Positions 39,911-52,156 of a DNA stretch of 64,000 bases are shown piece after piece. The notes under the pieces were generated by a model. The model saw only the letters and a program-made list of their open reading frames with translations, had not been told where the DNA came from and ran no database searches. The DNA is from Paraphysomonas bandaiensis. Lineage: Eukaryota; Protista; Chrysophyceae. Position 1 is the stretch's first letter, and every line of letters begins with the position of its first letter. The stretch lies in assembly GCA_965644295.1 (NCBI GenBank), contig CBFFRP010000215.1:62001-126000 (forward strand), in the 5' to 3' direction. The position numbers and the translations under genes are program-made.

Positions 39911-41439
39911 TTTTTTATTTGATATGTCGATTGACATAAGTGACGCAAGCATTTTATTTCTGATACGTGGTTCTGATGTCATTCCCATGCACATAGCTTC
40001 TCGTTATAGACTACTTTTGTTTCAACTGCCTTCATTTATAGATTTGATTATGGCATATTGTATTCACATTTAATTGTTTTATTCTCGTCATACTTCCAGA
40101 CAGAATTTCTGTTTATTAGTGCGTTTTGTAATAGCTGTACACAGGCAAATGTTGAGATCCAAGAATTTCTCACAGTGTGGATGCATAAACCGAATTGTTG
40201 CATTACCAAGGTGGCGAGATTACCTTGATACGATATTAAAATCGTCAAGTGTGACACTCTTTCATTGCCAAACTATCGTGACAATCGTTTGACTAACTAC
40301 TTTAATAATTTTGCTTCAGTATGTAACCTGTGTGACTGCAACAGCACTATAGTTATAGTTATGTGTAAAAGAAACAATGTATCATCTAAGGAGATGAAGA
40401 TCTCTCCCACCTCAGCAATTTTTCACCAAATTTGGAGCAGAATATTTTGTAAGGATTTTAGTGTTGAAGTCAAGTGAGCTTATGATGCTACTTTCTTCGG
40501 TATGCAGCTCTATATGCGCATATGTATAGAGTAGTCAAGTATTCAGCACTGCATTGATTCCGGTTAAGCAACTACTCCTTACATAGCGTACACTATACAT
40601 AGAAATGGCAACTATCTATACTCGAACAAATAAAAAAACAGTTTTCCTATTTACATATTCACATATCGTTAAGCCTGCCTAATATTTCATGTACACGTTG
40701 ACAAATACATTTCTCCTCTGTACATACATTTTTTTCTATTGTGTTGCAAAATGCTGTTGACCCACTTAAGGTACGTGATAGTTATCCGTCTGACACCCTA
40801 TGCTGCTATGCTTGAGTAGATTTGAGTAGATTCAATGTAGCACTATTCTGGTAATAACTGATTCGAGTGGTGGGAGTAATCAACCATCGCAAATATGCCT
40901 GTCCGATATCTGATTAACACTATTGAGAATATATTCCGATATTGACGATATGTAGATATTCACAGTAAACACTGTGCATAAGTTGTGCTATACATATAGA
41001 TACTATGCATCAATACACTGCTAGGAGTGCTCTCTGCGCTGCAAAGATACACTGCCAGAATATCTAGCTAGATCAATACCCGCCCAAAGATATCCCACTT
41101 ACGGTATTTTCGAAAAAAATAGCAATTTTCGACACCCCAGGTGCAGTAGTTTTTAGGAGATAGGTGATATTTTCCAGGATTTCCCAGGATTCGCGACAGG
41201 AAGTGTGAAGTAGAGTGAAGTGTTCATAATATAGCCAATAGTTAAGTTGCATCAGTCCACTTCGTGTTGACGAGTTGAAGTGAAGTTTTATATTCATATT
41301 TGGACTGAGTCATATATATGAGTATGAGCAGTGTGCACATTACTCATTTCGGGCTCTGCTATCTCCTGTGGCTAAGAAATGCCATCGAATGTTGGGATTG
41401 CAACACTTGAGCTCTCAACACCGTTGACGTGGAGGTACA

Positions 41440-44400
41440 ATGCGCAGTGGTGGTCATTTTAATCCTGAGTATATAGTAGAGCTATGGCGATGCTATTCAA
41501 GGGTACGTGTATTATCTCTATTCTCTCTCTCTCTTACTGTGAACACAGATGCGGAGTGCTGTGCACAGGCGATGGAGGTTGAATTGAAAGAGCAGTTGAG
41601 GCGATATCTTGTGACGGATTTCTCTGTGCATGTTAAAAACAGCGGGAAATGTGATGTATTGGAAGCGTACAATGATGCCTTAAGTAGTGAGAAATTAATT
41701 GATGGACTGTATGGAAAGTTGAAAACTCTTGCTGTGAGTGATAAACAGCTCTGGGAGTTTTCGAAGCATTTCAAACTTCCAATTGGATTAAGTCATAGAC
41801 TCGTACGAGATGCAAGTACTTTTTTGTATTCATTAAAGAAAGGGCACTTGCTTGTGGATTCTATCTGTATTGTTGAAATATACGAACAGAGCTCTCATTT
41901 CAAAGTAATTCACGCTGACTGGAACTGCTTTCTGGTCGCAAGGGTCTGCAGTATTACTAATATTGCTCAATGTAGACCTAGAAGTGACACTTGGATATCT
42001 TTGGGCTTCCATTCTCATATTGTAACCGCTTATTTTTACCGGATACACCGAGAAAATGATAGGTTTTGCTTGTTTGTTCAACACATAGATGGTGCTCTAT
42101 CGCTGAAACACTTCTTAGATATTCAATCGGGTACAGAGGGGACTGATGTATCCAGTATAGTACGGTCATCGTTTCGCACAATGATATCACTTTGTCGCGC
42201 TATAGATCACTGTCATGTACGAGGATGTCCTCATCTGTGCATATGTCCGGAAAATGTATTAATGGTAAGTGATAACCAATCGGTTAGTGCTGACTGGAAC
42301 GTGATGATAACGGGGTTTGAGCTATCATCGACTGAGCGTGACTGTGGTGAGTACTTTCTACTTTGCTGCCAAGTTATGTGATTTTTGTGTGCTGTTTAAT
42401 TCATGAACCGTATTCATTGTAAATCATCTTGATCATTTTACCTCATAGATAAGTACGATAGACTTATCACTATGTTTCTTATAGCATTTTACTTATTTGA
42501 CTTTAATTGTGCACAGATTCAATATATGTTGCTCCAGAGCTCGCATACTCTGACGAAGCTCTGCCAGTTGCTGATGTATATTCTTTAAGTATGGTGTTTC
42601 TAGATATCATCCGGGGTCGTACCCTTTATCCCAAGGAGATAGAAGCGTATTTAAGATGTGATGATGGGACGAAACATGAAAATGGAGCAGATTATGACCT
42701 TCCTCCGCATATTTCAGCAATGGTAGATGCTGCATTTGCTGAGTCTTGCCTGCCAACACGTAGAATTTACCCTCTCCTCCCAGTTATAGAGAGCGGCCTG
42801 CGTGCCAACCCTGACCTTCGTCCCTCTGTGCGAGAGATGCTGGAGCAGCTTCATGACGCACATAAGTACACTACACTGGCCCCTACCCTTCCTCCTCCCC
42901 CGCCTGCAGTTGCGTCAGAATCTCCTGAAAATATGAGTAATCTCGCTTGGGGGGAAATGGAGGTGGGGTGTCTGGAGAGCGCCAGGGAACATTGGATTGG
43001 GGCACTAGCCAGCAACCCAGCTGATCTTGTAGTACTTTGGAACTTGACTTTGTGTAGGTGGAGATGTGGAGAAATTGGTCCTGCGGAGGCAGTCGGCATA
43101 ATACGCAGGCACCAAATGCAGTTTGTATCTCCTTTCAGTGTACAGGTACACGCAAGCAGTGACTCTGCTGACCATGATGCTCTATGTTCAACGATATGCA
43201 GTGAATCACTTCTCTCTCCCATCTCTGGGATTGGTCCGTTGCTACCAACTTCAGAGATGGCAACTTCATGCGCATATATATGGTGCTCAGGATTTACACC
43301 CGCAGAAGCACTTATGTACAGAAAAATGCAGATGTTCTGTGCGGATGACACATCTCTGGTATTGAGCAGTCATCTGACCAGGTGTAGGTTAGAGTACGAT
43401 GCATCTTTGGAATGTCTCGTTGAACATGTTCGAGAGAGACCAGGTGTGTATCATTCATCTCACTGTGCAGTGGGAAGCGGGATGGTGTGGCTGAATCTCG
43501 ATCCTGACATCGAGACAATAGAAGTTGGGTCGTATGACGACCCACACGACGGTATTGTGCTCTTGGTGGGCGAGGTGATGCAGTATAATGGGATGTGTCT
43601 ATTTGTTGAGCGGGCAGTCGATGGGGTATGCAGTGTTCCTGGTCTGGGTGAAACTGTGCTGTGTGTGACTGTTTACGTTCTCTTGGAAGGACGCTGGGCA
43701 TATGATGAATTTGGAAATGAAGGTGGGGAGAATATGGATGACCTTCCGAGTGTGGTAGGATATGACGAGGATTCTTATTCTTCTCCTTCATCACAGAGTG
43801 AAACGGACACGAATCTTACTCCTGCCCCTCCCCGTCGACATTATTTTCTTGCAGTTGGAAATTTACGCGAAAGTTGCTTTTACCTCGAGGGAATATGTGC
43901 GGTGTGGGGAATAAACCCCGATCAACGTCCAGTAAGGCTGCAGTTAATCTCTCCTGAATTGCTGCTTGTCTCGGGATCGGGAGGTTTGCTAGCTCATGCT
44001 AGCCCGCCGCATGAAATCCGTGGAGTTCCCTCAATACGCATAGTGCATATGAGCTCTGACCCCATGTTACAACCGCATATTCATCCAGACAGGCTCTCAG
44101 CAAGTCATAGTGTTAGCAGCACTGTAGTGGACTCCAGTTATTCCCCTGGAAGCCGAACTCTTATATCCGGCGATTCACAGGGTACATTGTGTCTCTGGAA
44201 GAAAGACTCTGAAGAATCGGACGTGTTCACCCTGGTGGGTAAACCTCTGTCTTTGTGCGGGAGGATATACCGCATTGTCCAGTCTGAACAGAGTGTGCAT
44301 GCCCTTGTTAGTCTTGATATGCAATTACTGTTGGTTTCTGCATCGGTTGGTGGTGTGACTTGTAATTTGCACGTTCGATCTATTTTGGATGCTGTCCCTC

Positions 44401-47400
44401 CTGGTAAAGGCTTGAGTCCACAATACGTCGCGCGTTTTACTGGGAAGACTGTTAGCGTGTGGCGTGTGTCCACACAGACTCGTCAGTCGACGGTCAATAC
44501 CACATCGAAGTATAGCTTAAAGGTTGAGTTCATGTCAGTCCCTAACGCAGAATATTTCTCACATTCTAAGGAGCGGTGCACATTCAGGTAATAAAATGTT
44601 GCTGAAGCGGTAGTTTTATATTGAGTGCAGGTTTATGCCTGTGGAGTCATATCGCAACATCATGAGCAAGAAAGCGACTCTGCGAACCCTCAACGAGAGA
44701 TTGTTTCACCTAGTCAACACTGATGACTTTGAATATGCTCTTGACGACATAATGGATTGCAGGAAATGCATGCCATCTTTACGATTCAATAGCGAGGTAT
44801 TGACGTGGTACATGTCCATCAGCGAGAAGTCAGCTTTGAGCGTTGGATGTGATAGTCAGAATAGAACAGTGAAATTTATCCCGACAGACAGTCTTGACTC
44901 GTGTCGCTCTCCCACCGTCACGTCTGATATTGAAATGCTATCTGCAATAAGTGCGAGCATGCAGATATCTGTTTCAGGACCGGTATTTCCGTTTGCTGTG
45001 TCCAGTAACGGGTTTCTCATTGCAACATCAGCCCGATCTAAAATAGCTGAAGCAACAGGGGATACCTGGAAGGCAAGAAATAACCACTGTAATGAAGCAC
45101 ATGTGTTATTGTTGGCGGTGCGTATTTATTGCCTTTCCAACCGAAAGCTCCTCTATACTATGGACTTCAATGACTTGTTTCTTGGGTTTGATGCATGCTA
45201 CCCGTGCTGTCGATCTTATAAACGGCTCGAAAGTATTTATATAGTCTCAGCCTTGAGTTTTTCATGTAATGGAAAGGTATTGCTTGTTGCTGTGGATCGG
45301 CAGAATTGTAAGGTATCTTCCTTGATACTCTGGTGTTGCCAAGAGCGGAAATGCATTGGCCGCATGGACCACACAGATGGATCAGTCATAGAGGCCAAAT
45401 GGAGTCATTCGGACACTCTACTTACTGTATTCTTCTCGGATGAAAAGTTTTTGACTTATTTCTTGGATTGGCCAGTAGTAAAAATATCCCACACGACAGC
45501 CCCTGCGAATAGATGGCTCACATTGCGAGGCATATGTGCTACCTCTGATAGCATGACAGATGAAGAAACATGTACATCTGGGGGAAGTCCCAACGATATA
45601 TACGTGAATAACATGTCGAACAGCGATGTGGATACGTATCAAAGAGATACAATTCTGCGGAGTGGAGAGTATTTTGACTCACTATGTATGACCAGCATGG
45701 ACGCAAGCACTGCTCTCCCTACACCAGCTTCATCTATGCTGAACAAATATGCTGACATGAAACAGTGGGCCGTGCGTTCTATCGAGGCGTGGGTGCGGGC
45801 ATGTGACGATGATGTCACTGGTGGTACACTATACGTTCCCCGGTCAGTTCATTCTGTCCGAGCTTCTCGTGTGTGTATTGTACATGGAGCGCCTTTTAGC
45901 GGCAAGTCTGTGATATTATCCCGCGCAGCTTTGGAATGCTCCCCTAATGTGCTCGCAAGTGTTTTTATTCCTCGACATCGATTTAAAAGCTCCTCACCTA
46001 ACAGCATCGCGTTTGATATGATATGTGCAATATCCCAGCAGTTACGAATTGCGTACGGCTCCCGGTATACTATCCCTATGCTACATGAGCTATCGAATGA
46101 AGTTCAACGTCTTTCAGAAGTAAGCGGTGGCGCTCTAAGAAACACCAATATATGTCGTGGGGCCTCGCGCCACTCCAGAAACTTCTCAGTCGCCAGCAGC
46201 CTTGGGTCCTTAGAGAGCAACACTTTCGTGGAGGAAGATATAACGTATGATAACCTACTACTCTGCACATGCAGGGCTCTCCGACTGACGACTGATGAGG
46301 CGACCGCACTCATGACACCTATTGCAATTATTCCTGACATCAAGCGTCTCTCCCTTAGAACACTGTTCGTTGCATTAATAAGTAAACCTCTCTCCGAGCT
46401 CCCAGCTCCAAGAGGCAATGCAGCCATATTTGTAGATGGATTGGATATATGTGACAGTTCTTCAACATATACGCATGCTCAATGTGTAGTAGACCTTCTT
46501 ATTCATAGCACGCCTCCGTGGTGCAGAATTGTTCTCTCATCCAGACACTCGCCGATTCAAATACCTGTTGTACAGGACGTAGAGAGCTTTGGTGTACATT
46601 TGGACAGAGAGGGTACAAACGCTGCAGATATGTTTTCACTCTGTAAAGAGCTTTTACGAGAAAAAGGTCTCAAAGGCGATGTTTTGAGCTCTGCGAGGAC
46701 CATCTTTTCTGCCGCCGAAATGTCATTGCGTCAGGTGGAGCTCTTGCACTCTGTACTTCCTGATTCTCTGACCCCTGGTACTTTGCGCCGCACACTTTGC
46801 GTACTTGACCTTCGTGATATCGCTCTTGATGAGTTGTTTTCTTTTCCCTCTTCGGAAGTAAGTGTCAACTTTTCCTGTGATATTTTGATTGCCAATGAGT
46901 GTATGCGTGCAGAAATTTCAGCGTGCACAACGGGTATTGCAGGTCCTATGTGCGGCATTCGAGAGTCCCACTGTGCAATATATTGCGGACGCCCTTCAAG
47001 ATATGACTGAAGCGCAGGTAAATTGTTACCCTGAAGCGAGTCAGATATATGTGAATTAAAATTGATATCTTGTGAATTTTTGGGCGTATGCTGATTGATT
47101 TTGTTTTGCATGTTTGAGATTTTTTGCAGGTCGGACATATCATTGAGGCTGACTTATATTCGTTCTTTGAGGTTATGGACTGCAATAATACATGCACAGT
47201 GGTCCCGCGCTCTAGTACCTTCGTATCTTGGGTGCGATCGGGTGACAGACTTGGACATGCGTACTACATTAACCCACAGGAGGGACACAATTACCTCTGT
47301 GCATTGTATCTAAAACACTGCAGCAACAAGTCTATAGCAATGGATCACCCATGGCAGGCATACCTGAAGACCTATGGACCGTCACACTTGCACAGGTGTG

Positions 47401-49031
47401 TTTTTGTACTAAAGGCGGTGGTTACTTTCAGTTCATAAGTGCCTATAATAATGATTTTTTCCACTTTTAAACCTTGTGGTGCAGGTCATCGAGGGGATTG
47501 TGCAAACTTACCCGTGGAGTTCGGAAACTGGATGAAACTAGTGGCATTAAGGGCCCCCTCCCACATCAAATCGGGTATCTAGAGAATATACAGGAGATAT
47601 ACGCACGAAGAGTAGGTATATATGGGCCTATACCGAAGGTAGGAAGTAATGTTGTTGCAGTGCCAGTGTTGGTATAACGTATGTGTATTTTTTCTTGATT
47701 CTGTGTATACTAAATATGTACGATTAGGAGTTCGGGTGCTTGAGAAATATGCGAGTGCTCTCCATGGGAAATAATAGGATTTCGGGGCATATACCATCCA
47801 CTTTGGGTAACCTTCGTAATTTACAGCGCATTGTTCTCCATCAGAACAAACTATCTGGTCCCGTCCCACCATGTCTCTGGGAGCTTGGATGTATCGTAAA
47901 TCTTGCCGGAAATTCGGGGTTGCAGCATGGACCTGATGTGCCCCCCGAAGAACGTGGGGCACTGGAAGCTATTTATCGATCCACAGATGGAGGACACTGG
48001 GCATGCAGCTCAGGATGGTGCGAAGAGGGGGTACCGGTGTGCAAATGGTATAAAGTAGGTGTGCTTGGTTCTCGAGTGCATAGCATAGTGATGTCTTCGA
48101 ATAATATGGTGGGCACACTCCCGACAGAAATATCTCGTCTGTCACATTTAAGAATGGTTGAACTCGCTACCATGCCAGGTACGCTATTACTACCGTATTA
48201 TACATCAGGGGTCATTAATTGAAAGTATTAAACATACGTGAAGGTATGCTATGTCTCCTGTTCTGATGGTGTTGCATTTGTAGGTTTATGTGGGCAAATT
48301 GGTCCTGCTGTATGCGCTTTGACTGGGCTTAGACGCCTTTGCATTTGCCGGTGCTGATATTTTGAATAAACTTTGAAAAAATCATAAACCTTTATGTAGG
48401 TGCTCCTTGACTGGACGAATTCCCCATGAAATTGGTAACTTGACTCATTTGGAAGAGTTGCAGGTAGTTCGACCTGTGAATTATAGTTTTGTGGTTGATA
48501 TCTATATTCAGCTCTTTGGAAATAATCTAAACGGTAGAATTCCTGATTCCGTATCTAATCTAACGTCGCTTCGACTCCTCAGTCTTGGAGAATACACTGG
48601 GTGAGACGATTGCCTTTGTAACAGTTGTTATCTCATATAAGTGTCTGTATATCAGTGGTAACAGTTTTACCCCTAGCCATATTCCTTCATGTCTGTCAAG
48701 TTTGGTGCGTTTGGAAGCACTCTTTATGGCAAATTGCCACCTTCGTGGACCTCTTCCGGACTGGATCGGAGGACTTGTCGAGTTGCGACAGTTAGATCTC
48801 CAGCGCAACAACCTTCGGGGGGTTTTACCTCACTCCATAGGAATGTTAACAAACATTCTCTATTTGAATCTTAAAGACAATGCAGATCTTCAGGGGCCAC
48901 TGCCTATTCAGCAATTAACAAGACTGACGAAGCTAAACCGACTGTCGCTGGTGCATTGTCGGTTCACGGTGTCAGAGGAAGAGGCTGCGGAACTGCAGAC
49001 CAGGCTCCCAAGATGCCGACTTTGGATTTGA
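41440..49031 (+). CDS. Multidomain NLR-like protein: pseudokinase - TPR - WD40-like - NACHT/STAND NTPase - winged helix - LRR (one spliced gene, over 2000 aa)
   Basis: Frame-preserving GT-AG introns at 42347-42516, 44588-44630, 46858-46912, 47018-47129, 47396-47483 and within the LRR exons. Kinase motifs YVAPE, DVYSL and LRPS; Walker A GAPFSGKS; Walker B IFVDGLD; LSSR; LxxLxLxxNxLxGxIP repeats. 5' end uncertain. Confidence 0.82.
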
Positions 49032-50126
49032 ATGAATGATATTGCGTGAAAGTCATGTATTGCGGTTGTACATTTTTCGGTGTAATATCCATGATATCGT
49101 TGATTTGAACTCGAAAATATTTTGTAATAATATTTCTACTGATACAATGCTTGATTTCGAAATTTTGCTTTAATATTATTTTTCTGAAATAAGGAAATTG
49201 CAACCGTTGCAGAATATTCGGTTATGATTATCTCTTCTAATACTGCAATGATTCCATTAATAATAAAAACTCAAATTGAATTTCAAAACTTAGCTTCCTT
49301 AATGCTTTGTTACATTTGCTTGATACTGGATACCGTGTACGTATTATGATATCGTACCTATACATCACACCAGAATAACTGACTTATAGTCACCCGGCTG
49401 ATTACCTGGACAGTATATTGTATATTGTATATTCTTGATTTTTGAAACACTTGAAGGTACAGTAAGATTACATAATTCCTAAAATTTACGTTTGATGTTC
49501 TAGAAAGTATCGTTTCAGGCCCTCTCAAACGTAAGTTTTAGCAGCAAATACTTTAGCGTTTGACAAGACGGATTCATATTTTTCGGGACAACTTTTAGGA
49601 ACACATAGAATGGACCGCTATCTGAATATCTGCAAAACCGAGTTTCTCATCATAAATGTTTTTTCAATGGCAAGCATCTTAATACATGCATACAACACTA
49701 CACAGCTACCTGTGTTATAAACGAGACCCTCAGTAAATATATCAAGAATAATATATAGTTAGTGCTTTCCAAAGCTGTCACATTAAGGTACAGTGATAGC
49801 TACGTTTCTTGTTCGGTGATGAGTTCAGTCATATTGAGTATGATAAAGATGCAATAAATTACATTCATTTTCTTAACTATATTTGCAATTGCAACTGTGG
49901 TAATAGAGTGTGACTAAGATCATTGATACCTGAAATTTATGTCGTTAACGCAATATTGTAGTTATCACTAGCAATAATCAATTATCTTTTCTGACGGCAC
50001 TTACACGATTCAAGATAAAATAGGATGAAATCAAGTCGTTTTCCCCATAATAATTCACAAAATGAATACTTCAATAGTATAAATAATATACATATATAAA
50101 AAACTTCAAGAGAATTGAACTAAATA

Positions 50127-52156
50127 CTATATTGAATCACCGTTATGTGCATTCGCCCTGAGAGTCGTGTGATGCAACACCGTATCATAAAATGTTTTGA
50201 ACTGTTGAAAATCAATTCGACCAGACTTCTCAGTGTCCATGGCTTCAAAGAGTGCCTCTATGTCCGGTATGCTCGTTTTATTCTCGGATATACCGAGGAC
50301 ATCGCGTGGCGCAGCTTCGACGGGGCTAGCCTGGAGTAGGCATGCAACAACCATTTTAAGCTCCTCCAAGTCAATATAGCCCGTATCGTTTATATCTATT
50401 GAAAGTCAAGACATCAGTAAATAAATCAAGTATGGATATAGCAACTACCAAATATTTGAAAATACAGTCTCGCATTTGAGTCTTCCAGTGGGTCACAAGT
50501 GATTGGCTTGAAAGCTAGCATTGCAAGCAAAAACTCTTTTATATTTATTGTACCGGAGTTGCCGATATCAAATATAGTAAACACAGCAGGATTGGCTAGT
50601 TCAGGTAGTCCGCACTGTAGAAGAATTTCCACAAATGTCGCATAGTTAATTTCACCCTCGGCCGTGTCCATGTCTTCATGGATGCCATTCCGCTCGCTTT
50701 TACTCTTCTCACCTAGCCCACGTCGTACCTGCTCGTGCTTTCCTACATTAGTCCGCACTTCTTCTTGGGACCACCTGCGTGAGAATAAGTTCCCTTTTCT
50801 GGCTTCGCGTATGTTGCTGTGACTATTCTTTGCAGGGTGGTGGGGTGATGACTTCGAGTGAAAAGGTGTCGGAGAAGACATCTGGGGGCGAGACACGGTC
50901 TTTACGATCATTTGCTTCAAATTATGAAGCTTAAAATTGAATGACTGTTCGACATTTACATCACCATCTAAGCTACTATCCCCTCGCTCACGCAAAAAAG
51001 GCAAAACTTTGTGCAGATTTTCTCGTCTGTTCAGGTTGTCCGATGCGATTTTGTGGTCCAAGAAAAATGTTCGTAGCTTTTGACGCAAAGCCAGCTGCTT
51101 TATTCTTGTTACGTATTCCTCGCCAAGATCATCATCAGGTGCTTGATCCACCAACCAAGGATGATGTAGAATTTCATCTATTGTGGCTCTTTGGGATGGA
51201 TCTTTCGTCAGAATGCGGCGCACCAAGTCCTTTGCGGCATCAGATATATTGTCCCACCCAATGCCTGTCATGTCAAAGTATGTGCCATGAGTAATCTGAT
51301 GCATGGCACTGGGATCATATGGTGCCAGTCCGCTCAGCATGCTGTACAGCGTGCAACCAGCCTGCCATATGTCCGTTTTCTCGCTGTATATCGATGAAAT
51401 TATTGACTCAGGTGCAAAACAGCCATTAGTTCCCTTAAGGGTGTAGCACAAGTGTTCAGATGAACCTTCCGGTAATTGCACCATGAGACCAAAATCAATA
51501 AACTTGACAGGAGAATCTTCTTCATACCCCACGAGCATTATGTTTTCTAATTTGATATCACGGTGGATACATCGGCGCTTGTGTAGACATTCCATTGCAC
51601 GAATGACTCTTTTGAACATTTTAGCCAGATAACTCTCTGACACACACTTCCGGTTATATATCCTGTCAGACAGCTCGCCACCCTCTACCAGCTCCATCAC
51701 TATCACCGGATGAGGCTCCTTGAAGTGTTTCCCATCTATGTATCCCTCAGACGTGTCCATGAACACCCCATAGAGCTGTACAATCCCATCTGTACCAGCA
51801 AGTAAGCTCATAACTTGTATTTCATTGATAATATCGTTCTCTGTGGGGGTCTGTAGTGTATATCCGAAGAACTTCAGAGCCACTCGATTACCAGTCGATC
51901 GACACATACCCGAGTAGACCTTCCCCATCCCTCCCTCCTGCAGATAACTCTTAATGATATAATCATCGGGGTCTAGAAATATCACTGTGTTCTGTAGCTG
52001 ATCGTATATAGAGGGTGTGTGTGTGTCTGTGTGTGTGGAGAGAGCCCCTATAGAGCCCTCTGTGTGTTGGGGTGTATTGAGAGGGGTTGTATGGATATCT
52101 GTGTGATGAGGAGAGGATGGAGGGGTAGGATTACTATGTGAGGTTGTGCAACCCAT
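50127..52156 (-). CDS. Calcium-regulated Ser/Thr kinase with C-terminal EF-hands (CCaMK/CDPK-like), 2 exons
   Basis: N-terminal MGC acylation motif. Kinase motifs GGMGKV, VALK, HRDIKLEN, DFG and APE are intact. EF loops DIGNSGTINIKEF, DINDTGYIDLEEL and DTEKSGRIDFQQF. Intron near 50397-50448. Confidence 0.92.

Follow-up and report, generated by a model that had tools for sequence, protein, structure and literature searches.

The locus at positions 41440 to 49031 of a 64,000-nucleotide stretch of Paraphysomonas bandaiensis DNA (contig CBFFRP010000215.1; hereafter called the window) raises the question of whether a kinase-like region, WD40-like strands, a nucleotide-binding NTPase and leucine-rich repeats (LRRs) are parts of one gene, and, if so, what kind of protein this gene encodes. 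A preliminary description of the sequence proposed a single gene for a receptor of the NLR type (nucleotide-binding, LRR-containing), possibly an independently assembled immune or non-self sensor. We found that 41440-49031 is one spliced gene with one transcript. The order of the parts in its protein is a pseudokinase, TPR-like helices, one or more beta-propellers, a NACHT NTPase of the NPHP3_N/TANC type, a winged-helix-like linker and two LRR blocks. On balance, we favor the reading that this large cytosolic protein of the STAND class (signal transduction ATPases that have numerous domains) is a conserved signalling switch, which fits the data better than an arms-race receptor.

The table of open reading frames (ORFs) shows a chain of same-strand ORFs spanning 41440-49031, and the preliminary description had joined them by frame-keeping GT-AG introns at five junctions and had called for an RNA check of the single gene. 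Four public sequencing runs were placed on the 5,951 letters from 43150 to 49100, namely two runs of organism A (X1 and X3), one run labelled as another organism (X4) and one DNA run (X7). A spliced RNA contig of 6,959 nucleotides (X3, record 3) covers 43150-49065 and skips nine GT-AG introns, and, as it has a further 1,688 nucleotides upstream of 43150, its start is near 41247-41293 and so precedes the ATG at 41440. All nine joints are present in RNA-derived contigs of X1 and X3, five of the same nine were found in the X4 fragments, whose identity is 99% or more, and in the DNA run X7 the stretch is unspliced and in one piece, with no joints. The resulting gene structure is as follows (a slash marks the joint in the translated junction).

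41440-49031, plus strand: coding region, 11 exons, 2,258 amino acids, stop codon at 49029-49031 (RNA joints, open frame, orthologs aligning to the last residue)
41440-42346, 42517-44587, 44631-46857, 46913-47017, 47130-47395 and 47485-47638, plus strand: exons 1 to 6
47728-48178, 48284-48350, 48400-48463, 48512-48600 and 48656-49031, plus strand: exons 7 to 11
42347-42516, plus strand: tenth intron, splitting the kinase region at G/AT DSIYVAPE (predicted; outside the RNA-compared stretch)
44588-44630, plus strand: intron at AG/G RFMP (RNA joint)
46858-46912, plus strand: intron at SE/KFQR (RNA joint)
47018-47129, plus strand: intron at AQ/VGHI (RNA joint)
47396-47484, plus strand: intron at HR/SSRG (RNA joint)
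47639-47727, 48179-48283, 48351-48399, 48464-48511 and 48601-48655, plus strand: introns of the LRR part (RNA joints)

When the ten introns are removed, the coding sequence contains a single stop, at its end. The kinase-splitting intron is supported by the open frame, by the Pkinase profile, which runs on over the intron (exon 1 matches profile positions 57-145 and exon 2 positions 163-259), and by the relative P0011, in which the same region is one uninterrupted frame with a single BLAST match to residues 100-1735. The five proposed junctions thus all keep the frame open, four of them being seen as RNA joints, and the proposal of one gene is borne out by the 6,959-nucleotide contig together with the 2,258-residue frame. 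We also considered that two or three adjoining genes (kinase-WD40, NTPase and LRR) had been wrongly joined by assembly or read-through, as an RNA contig running across two genes is, by itself, no proof of a single transcript. However, the frame is open over all ten junctions, the single open frames of three relatives span the kinase to the NACHT (P0011) or the middle region, the NACHT and the LRRs (P0013 and P0028), and the order of the parts is the same on each related contig. An artefact of this sort is therefore highly improbable and close to refuted.

An alternative start is possible at the ATG at 41484, with a 46-nucleotide intron (41503-41548), which would give 2,228 instead of 2,258 amino acids. 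In the RNA contig, the 5' leader (41300-41440) has two upstream ATGs (at about 41318 and 41324) that open a short upstream reading frame. Over the 5.9 kb compared, two bases of the assembly are read differently in the RNA runs X1 and X3 and three in the DNA run X7; the single-base differences are 44064 A>T, 47095 T>A (intronic) and 48773 A>T. Those at 44064 and 48773 were found in every covering run, including X7, and are likely to be assembly or strain differences rather than RNA editing.

The predicted parts of the protein, with approximate residue numbers unless they are exact, are listed below.

42007-42839, plus strand: pseudokinase, residues 190-410, split by the intron 42347-42516 (Pkinase hits, alignments)
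42921-43205, plus strand: TPR-like helical stretch, residues 438-532 (AlphaFold2 helices, conserved W/N/L pattern in orthologs)
43317-44549, plus strand: beta-propeller 1, residues 570-980 (all-beta AlphaFold2 model, Foldseek, invariant columns)
44959-45480, plus strand: second, partial WD40-like beta domain, residues 1103-1276 (VIA-align)
45754-46857, plus strand: NACHT/NPHP3_N NTPase, comprising the nucleotide-binding domain (NBD) and helical domain 1, residues 1368-1735 (Pfam, Atlas, Foldseek)
45886-45909, plus strand: Walker A, GAPFSGKS
46426-46446, plus strand: Walker B, IFVDGLD
46528-46545, plus strand: sensor 1, IVLSSR
46913-47395, plus strand: winged-helix-like region and linker, residues 1736-1859 (exact), exons 4 and 5 (50-60% identity, helix pattern)
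47485-47922, plus strand: LRR block 1, residues 1860-1975 (LRR_1, LRR_8 and LRR_4 above cut-off, repeat parse)
47923-48087, plus strand: Cys/Trp-rich cap between the LRR blocks, residues 1976-2030 (read from the sequence)
48088-49028, plus strand: LRR block 2, residues 2031-2258 (LRR_1, LRR_8 and LRR_14, RNA joints; crossed by four short introns)

Judged from its motifs and its predicted structure, the central region is a NACHT-type STAND NTPase. The Pfam profile NPHP3_N matched it at 28.7 bits, a marginal pass over the cut-off of 24.8; the relatives P0002 (26.6), P0005 (29.5) and P0006 (28.8) also passed, and P0001 and P0003 fell just below 24.8. No NB-ARC match was obtained on the exons of the window gene, NPHP3_N matching instead. 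In the Atlas, the language-model search with the NTPase reached a score of 0.96, all of the ten best hits being NPHP3_N/NACHT, and the shape search with query residues 340-742 returned NPHP3_N clusters in 10 of 10 cases (278-308 residues aligned, root-mean-square deviation (rmsd) 4.2-4.9). Foldseek aligned the NTPase with MalT, Apaf-1 and CED-4 at E values of about 1e-4, and its predicted local distance difference test score (pLDDT) in the AlphaFold2 model was 75-90 apart from a disordered insert. The P-loop, Walker B and sensor-like motifs noticed in the preliminary description are all intact, and the region models as a STAND NTPase. The Walker A pattern G.P..GKS is kept in P0001-P0005 and has the form GKT in P0008 (P0013 is unaligned at Walker A), and the aligned orthologs have Walker B motifs of the form DG[LMIV]D and sensor 1 motifs of the form [LM]TSR. 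Because these three motifs are kept in the aligned NACHT-bearing relatives, the NTPase is probably an active nucleotide switch. By sequence, no metazoan NLR was found at E values up to 10 in phmmer and family-profile searches of all PDB sequences, and, as to solved relatives, the PDB searches gave P-loop matches alone (e.g. adenylate kinase, NSF and p97). The insert between Walker A and Walker B (45910-46425, residues 1420-1590 or so) is, at about 175 residues, unusually long for a NACHT; it is partly Ser-rich and disordered (pLDDT below 35), and the orthologs have such an insert too.

Structure prediction also indicates a fold of the WD40 beta-propeller type in front of the NTPase. The AlphaFold2 model of exon 2 is all-beta at residues 271-675 (mean pLDDT 55 for the model, 70-84 for the beta part), and Foldseek matched propeller 1 to the propellers of DDB1, Nup, RACK1, Bub3 and WDR91 (E 3.5e-6 to 1e-4); the Pfam WD40 match was weak (E 0.26). 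The blade motif SGD..G...W in propeller 1 (LISGDSQGTLCLWK) is invariant across the family. In the AlphaFold2 model of exon 3 (mean pLDDT 62), three or four WD40 blades were seen at residues 110-283, and VIA-align superposed 110-125 residues of this second domain on blades of WDR61, Ski8 and WDR5 (Z 14-16, rmsd about 2.2 A). The WD40-like strands of the preliminary description were therefore recovered as propeller matches, and the segment that it had singled out, LISGDSQGTLCLWK, is the invariant blade motif.

For the N-terminal kinase fold, the adjoining active kinase (50426-52156, minus strand) and the orthologs served as the alignment reference. The Pkinase profile scored 21.9 and 15.4 bits on the two exons, both under the cut-off of 31.7. 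The catalytic loop, HLCICPEN, has Cys in place of the HRD Asp, with the APE motif retained. The loop reads HLC, HLN and HLD in the window gene, P0011 and L004, respectively, and the residues at the DFG position are TGF, SSL and TNF in the same order, so that the Mg-binding Asp is absent in all three proteins compared. Since all three lack the DFG Asp, the HRD Asp is lost in the window gene and the profile score is below the cut-off, the region is considered to be a pseudokinase; the kinase fold claimed earlier is present, with its catalytic Asp residues lost. The adjoining kinase gene itself, convergent with the NACHT-LRR gene, encodes, in a 576-residue frame, a Ser/Thr kinase that looks active (HRDIK, DFG and APE), with a C-terminal EF-hand-like tail.

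Between the pseudokinase and the propeller, the exon 2 model is helical at residues 136-230, after which come beta-strands over about 400 residues. These helices resemble TPRs, although no Pfam TPR match was found on the exons of the window gene, and the Atlas language-model score to PknG_TPR clusters (0.81) is below the reliable range. A bacterial origin of the kinase-TPR-WD40 half was considered and is unsupported: a word-indexed search with exon 2 gave no hits at E 1e-3 (proteins of 379-1,206 amino acids), and a score of 0.81 to the bacterial PknG_TPR clusters lies within the range that shuffled proteins reach. Scans with PADLOC and NCBIfam gave generic kinase hits alone.

C-terminal to the NTPase, the winged-helix-like region may correspond to that of TANC proteins, as HTH_TANC1 matched the same region of P0028 with an E value of 0.0018, at 18.5 bits against a cut-off of 27. 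No winged-helix profile matched P0013, P0016 or the exons of the window gene, and an Atlas search with the winged-helix and linker region gave no informative neighbour. The linker containing SNKSIA (47250-47520, about residues 1810-1870), which lies between this region and the first LRR, matches no Pfam family and is almost invariant in all relatives, including those that have no NACHT; judged from these alignments, it is the signature of the family. The two LRR blocks lie in the C-terminal 400 residues; LRR block 1 consists of 24-residue repeats of the type L..L..L.L..N.L.G.IP and is 57-79% identical to the relatives, and block 2 is 62-75% identical to L002-L005. The Cys/Trp-rich cap between the blocks (53-65% identity in the relatives) has no Pfam LRRNT match. 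No hydrophobic stretch of membrane-span score was found in the protein. Of the earlier domain list, the C-terminal LRRs are confirmed as two blocks of 24-residue repeats with Pfam LRR matches above cut-off; beyond the kinase, NTPase and LRRs, the propeller held, the TPR-like helices were recovered with no Pfam TPR, and the winged helix remains a weak, sub-threshold assignment.

Relatives of this gene are few. A search with exon 3, which encodes the second WD40-like domain and the NACHT, gave 10 hits at E 1e-3 or below among 1.84 billion representative proteins, none of which has an NCBI or UniRef name, and a profile search with the exon-3 alignment found P0002 and P0003 again and nothing further. 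Collinear relatives are present on at least seven environmental contigs; the matches on L002, L004 and L005 extend to the final residue, those on L003, L006 and L007/8 are partial, and the intron positions in L005 and L006 are the same as in the window gene. Further members came from a search in which the C-terminal module of P0013 was the query; they include proteins on GCA_014466315.1 and GCA_014466275.1, and two EukProt chrysophyte proteins, from Dinobryon divergens and Epipyxis sp., which are the sole named relatives. On these two assemblies, L009 (GCA_014466315.1, JACLAD010005126.1, 3133-9042) is an intron-free single frame of 1,969 amino acids with a detectable NACHT, and L010 (GCA_014466275.1, JACKZZ010008245.1, 5817-11054) is an intron-free single frame of 1,745 amino acids in which no NACHT was detected. 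No paper describing a combination of pseudokinase, propeller, NACHT and LRRs was found in a literature search. The architecture, which the preliminary description did not recognize, is thus real, conserved and undescribed in the literature found.

Within the window genome (62.5 Mb), the NACHT region and the winged-helix exon match this locus alone, so that the gene is single-copy. Its identity to the relatives is 34-39% in the pseudokinase, 29-40% in the propellers and 32-47% in the NACHT NBD, rising to 38-60% in the winged-helix-like segment (50-60% in five of six loci) and 42-79% in the LRR blocks (mostly 57-79%). The winged-helix/LRR end is therefore the best conserved (50-79%), compared with about 35% in the N-terminal half. 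At the level of these alignments, the pattern is the reverse of that of a diversifying receptor, and the gene appears as a member of a small, unnamed protist family with the C-terminal winged-helix-LRR module as its most conserved part. The earlier reading with diversifying repeat surfaces was not borne out, the LRR and winged-helix parts being the most conserved and the gene occurring once.

To divide the family into NACHT-bearing and NACHT-less members, we used hidden Markov models (HMMs) built from alignments made in this study. The NACHT is present in P0016/P0127, P0019/P0125, P0028 and P0033, and no match to the NACHT HMM was obtained in P0034, P0035, P0037, P0038, P0040, P0041 and P0042. 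All seven of the latter keep the winged-helix-LRR module, and five (P0034, P0035, P0037, P0038 and P0041) match the propeller profile; this NACHT-less sister group includes the two chrysophytes, Dinobryon and Epipyxis. The possibility that the gap of the short relatives holds a degenerate NACHT was also considered and rejected (hhalign probability 0.1%; the gap is about 130 residues in one relative). In a maximum likelihood tree of the C-terminal module, from which two very partial rows (P0044 and P0069) were omitted, all NACHT-less rows lie on one side of a branch with support of 95/92. With midpoint rooting only, the NACHT-less group is nested among the NACHT-bearing rows, suggesting a single loss of the NACHT.

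These NACHT-less proteins bear on the explanation that the NACHT is a passenger, and that the propeller and the winged-helix-LRR part form a non-switching scaffold in trafficking, the cytoskeleton or flagellar biology, comparable to large LRR/WD40 or NPHP3/TANC-type proteins. The single supported group of NACHT-less propeller and winged-helix-LRR relatives agrees with it, as does the near-invariant linker after the winged helix, the family signature. The aligned NACHT-bearing orthologs have, however, kept Walker A, Walker B and sensor 1 intact at an overall identity of only about 30-40%, which points to selection on nucleotide handling. We consider the passenger explanation improbable.

The immune reading, in which the protein would be a genuine NLR-type receptor of innate immunity or of non-self, independently assembled, with LRRs or propellers that would sense a microbial or viral ligand and a pseudokinase that would be a signalling domain or an integrated decoy, has more in its favor. 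NACHT and C-terminal LRRs are found in one chain with an N-terminal accessory domain, kinase domains are known as N-terminal modules in fungal NLRs (PMC4986451), and genes with NACHT, LRR and TIR domains are induced in virus-resistant haptophyte cells (PMC12489294). On the other side, the gene has no paralog in its genome, the LRRs are its most conserved part, collinear orthologs occur across lineages instead of a lineage-specific expansion, and NACHT-less sister proteins exist. Scans with Pfam, PADLOC and NCBIfam detected no death-fold, TIR or other known executioner domain, and a search against bacterial defence NACHT models found no similarity. As a whole, the immune reading proposed in the preliminary description is not favored, and we regard it as possible but rather unlikely. 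The two repeat sensor modules of the same proposal are a possibility. A more specific scenario, to which we give slightly less credence still, is that the NLR architecture arose once more, independently, in a stramenopile lineage, where the protein would sense an invariant microbial or viral ligand with a pseudokinase-propeller output and the chrysophytes would later have lost the NTPase.

For the conserved signalling switch that we prefer, a mechanism may be proposed by analogy with solved STAND proteins. The winged-helix-LRR module would hold the NACHT closed in the ADP state, as in Apaf-1, NLRC4 and MalT; once a conserved ligand or partner had bound the LRRs, the propellers or both, nucleotide exchange and oligomerization would become possible; and oligomerization would cluster the N-terminal pseudokinase-propeller platform as a scaffold on which downstream proteins could dock. 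Given the single gene copy and the conserved repeats, a stress, cell-fate or cell-biological hub, or a sensor of one invariant ligand, is more likely than a polymorphic pathogen receptor. Several points weigh against this interpretation. A receptor for an invariant microbial ligand, as in the case of NOD1 and NOD2, could show the same conservation of the LRRs. As the NACHT-less relatives show, the conserved module can function where the switch is missing, and the NTPase may thus be non-central. The Pfam match of the NACHT is barely over the cut-off, no solved NLR was found by sequence, and both AlphaFold2 models are mediocre (mean pLDDT 62 for exon 3 and 55 for exon 2). The winged helix, with its sub-threshold HTH_TANC1 match on P0028, is weakly supported.

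Elsewhere in the genome, at least seven Silic_transp loci were found (e.g. C348:104740-105963, C406:324812-326035 and C298:538687-540096), the matches being weak and each covering half of the profile, and no light-harvesting (Chloroa_b-bind) gene was detected. A diatom host, which the transporter loci had suggested, was rejected on these grounds and because chrysophytes are the sole named relatives of the protein; the host is probably a colourless, silicon-using flagellate of the stramenopiles from marine samples, perhaps chrysophyte-like. The family described here is almost absent from annotated proteomes, and its single copy makes the gene a clean knock-out target in a culturable marine flagellate. 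With a dead kinase and propellers in front and NACHT-less sister proteins, it may show what a nucleotide switch adds to a repeat scaffold.

Among known systems, the NTPases of the NPHP3_N/TANC type (NPHP3, TANC1/2, NWD1 and fungal NLRs) are similar in the NPHP3_N score over the cut-off, in the best language-model and shape neighbours, which are all NPHP3_N/NACHT, in the DG.D Walker B and TSR-like sensor 1 and in weak hits to a lid and a winged helix of the TANC1 type; in that group, partners with WD40 or TPR repeats are also common. The window protein differs in its plant-like 24-residue C-terminal LRRs, in having repeats on both sides of the NTPase, in its N-terminal pseudokinase and in the insert of about 175 residues that separates the Walker A and B motifs, and its identity to named members is too low for phmmer. 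ROCO/LRRK proteins, which are conserved and low-copy, combine LRRs, a Roc GTPase, COR, a kinase and WD40 in one giant cytosolic chain. The window protein has the same kit of LRRs, nucleotide switch, kinase fold and WD40 propeller, but its switch is a STAND NACHT ATPase, none of its exons matching Roc, Ras or COR, its order is reversed and its kinase is inactive.

The NLR type of receptor is believed to have been put together in separate events in plants and in animals. With the animal NLRs (NOD1/2, NLRC4 and NLRPs), the window protein shares the order of NACHT, helical and putative winged-helix region and C-terminal LRRs and, presumably, an autoinhibited ATP switch. It differs in having a pseudokinase N-terminus with no CARD, PYD, DD or BIR match, LRRs of a different class, the lack of any sequence match to solved NLRs, a single, conserved copy, and about 1,350 residues of pseudokinase and propeller before the NTPase; its NACHT-LRR arrangement probably arose independently of animal NLRs. 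In contrast to the NLR immune repertoires of plants and animals, which are multi-copy with variable LRRs, the window gene is single-copy, with the LRRs as its most conserved part.

In fungal kinase-NLRs, a protein kinase domain precedes the NACHT or NB-ARC domain and repeats come after it (PMC4986451), as in the window protein, whereas the kinase of the latter is catalytically dead and propellers lie between kinase and NTPase. Fungal NLR-like proteins end in ANK, WD40 or TPR repeats rather than LRRs, NACHT-LRR proteins being absent from fungi (PMC2939053). Diatoms are known to have genes of the NACHT and of the NB-ARC type (PMC5599023). The precedent for NACHT with LRRs outside animals comes from choanoflagellates, in which both domains occur in a non-animal protist protein without a death-fold domain (10.1101/211789); compared by description only, the window protein differs in that its relatives include chrysophyte stramenopiles. 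A further protist assembly of NACHT and LRRs would help to show how readily the NLR architecture arises.

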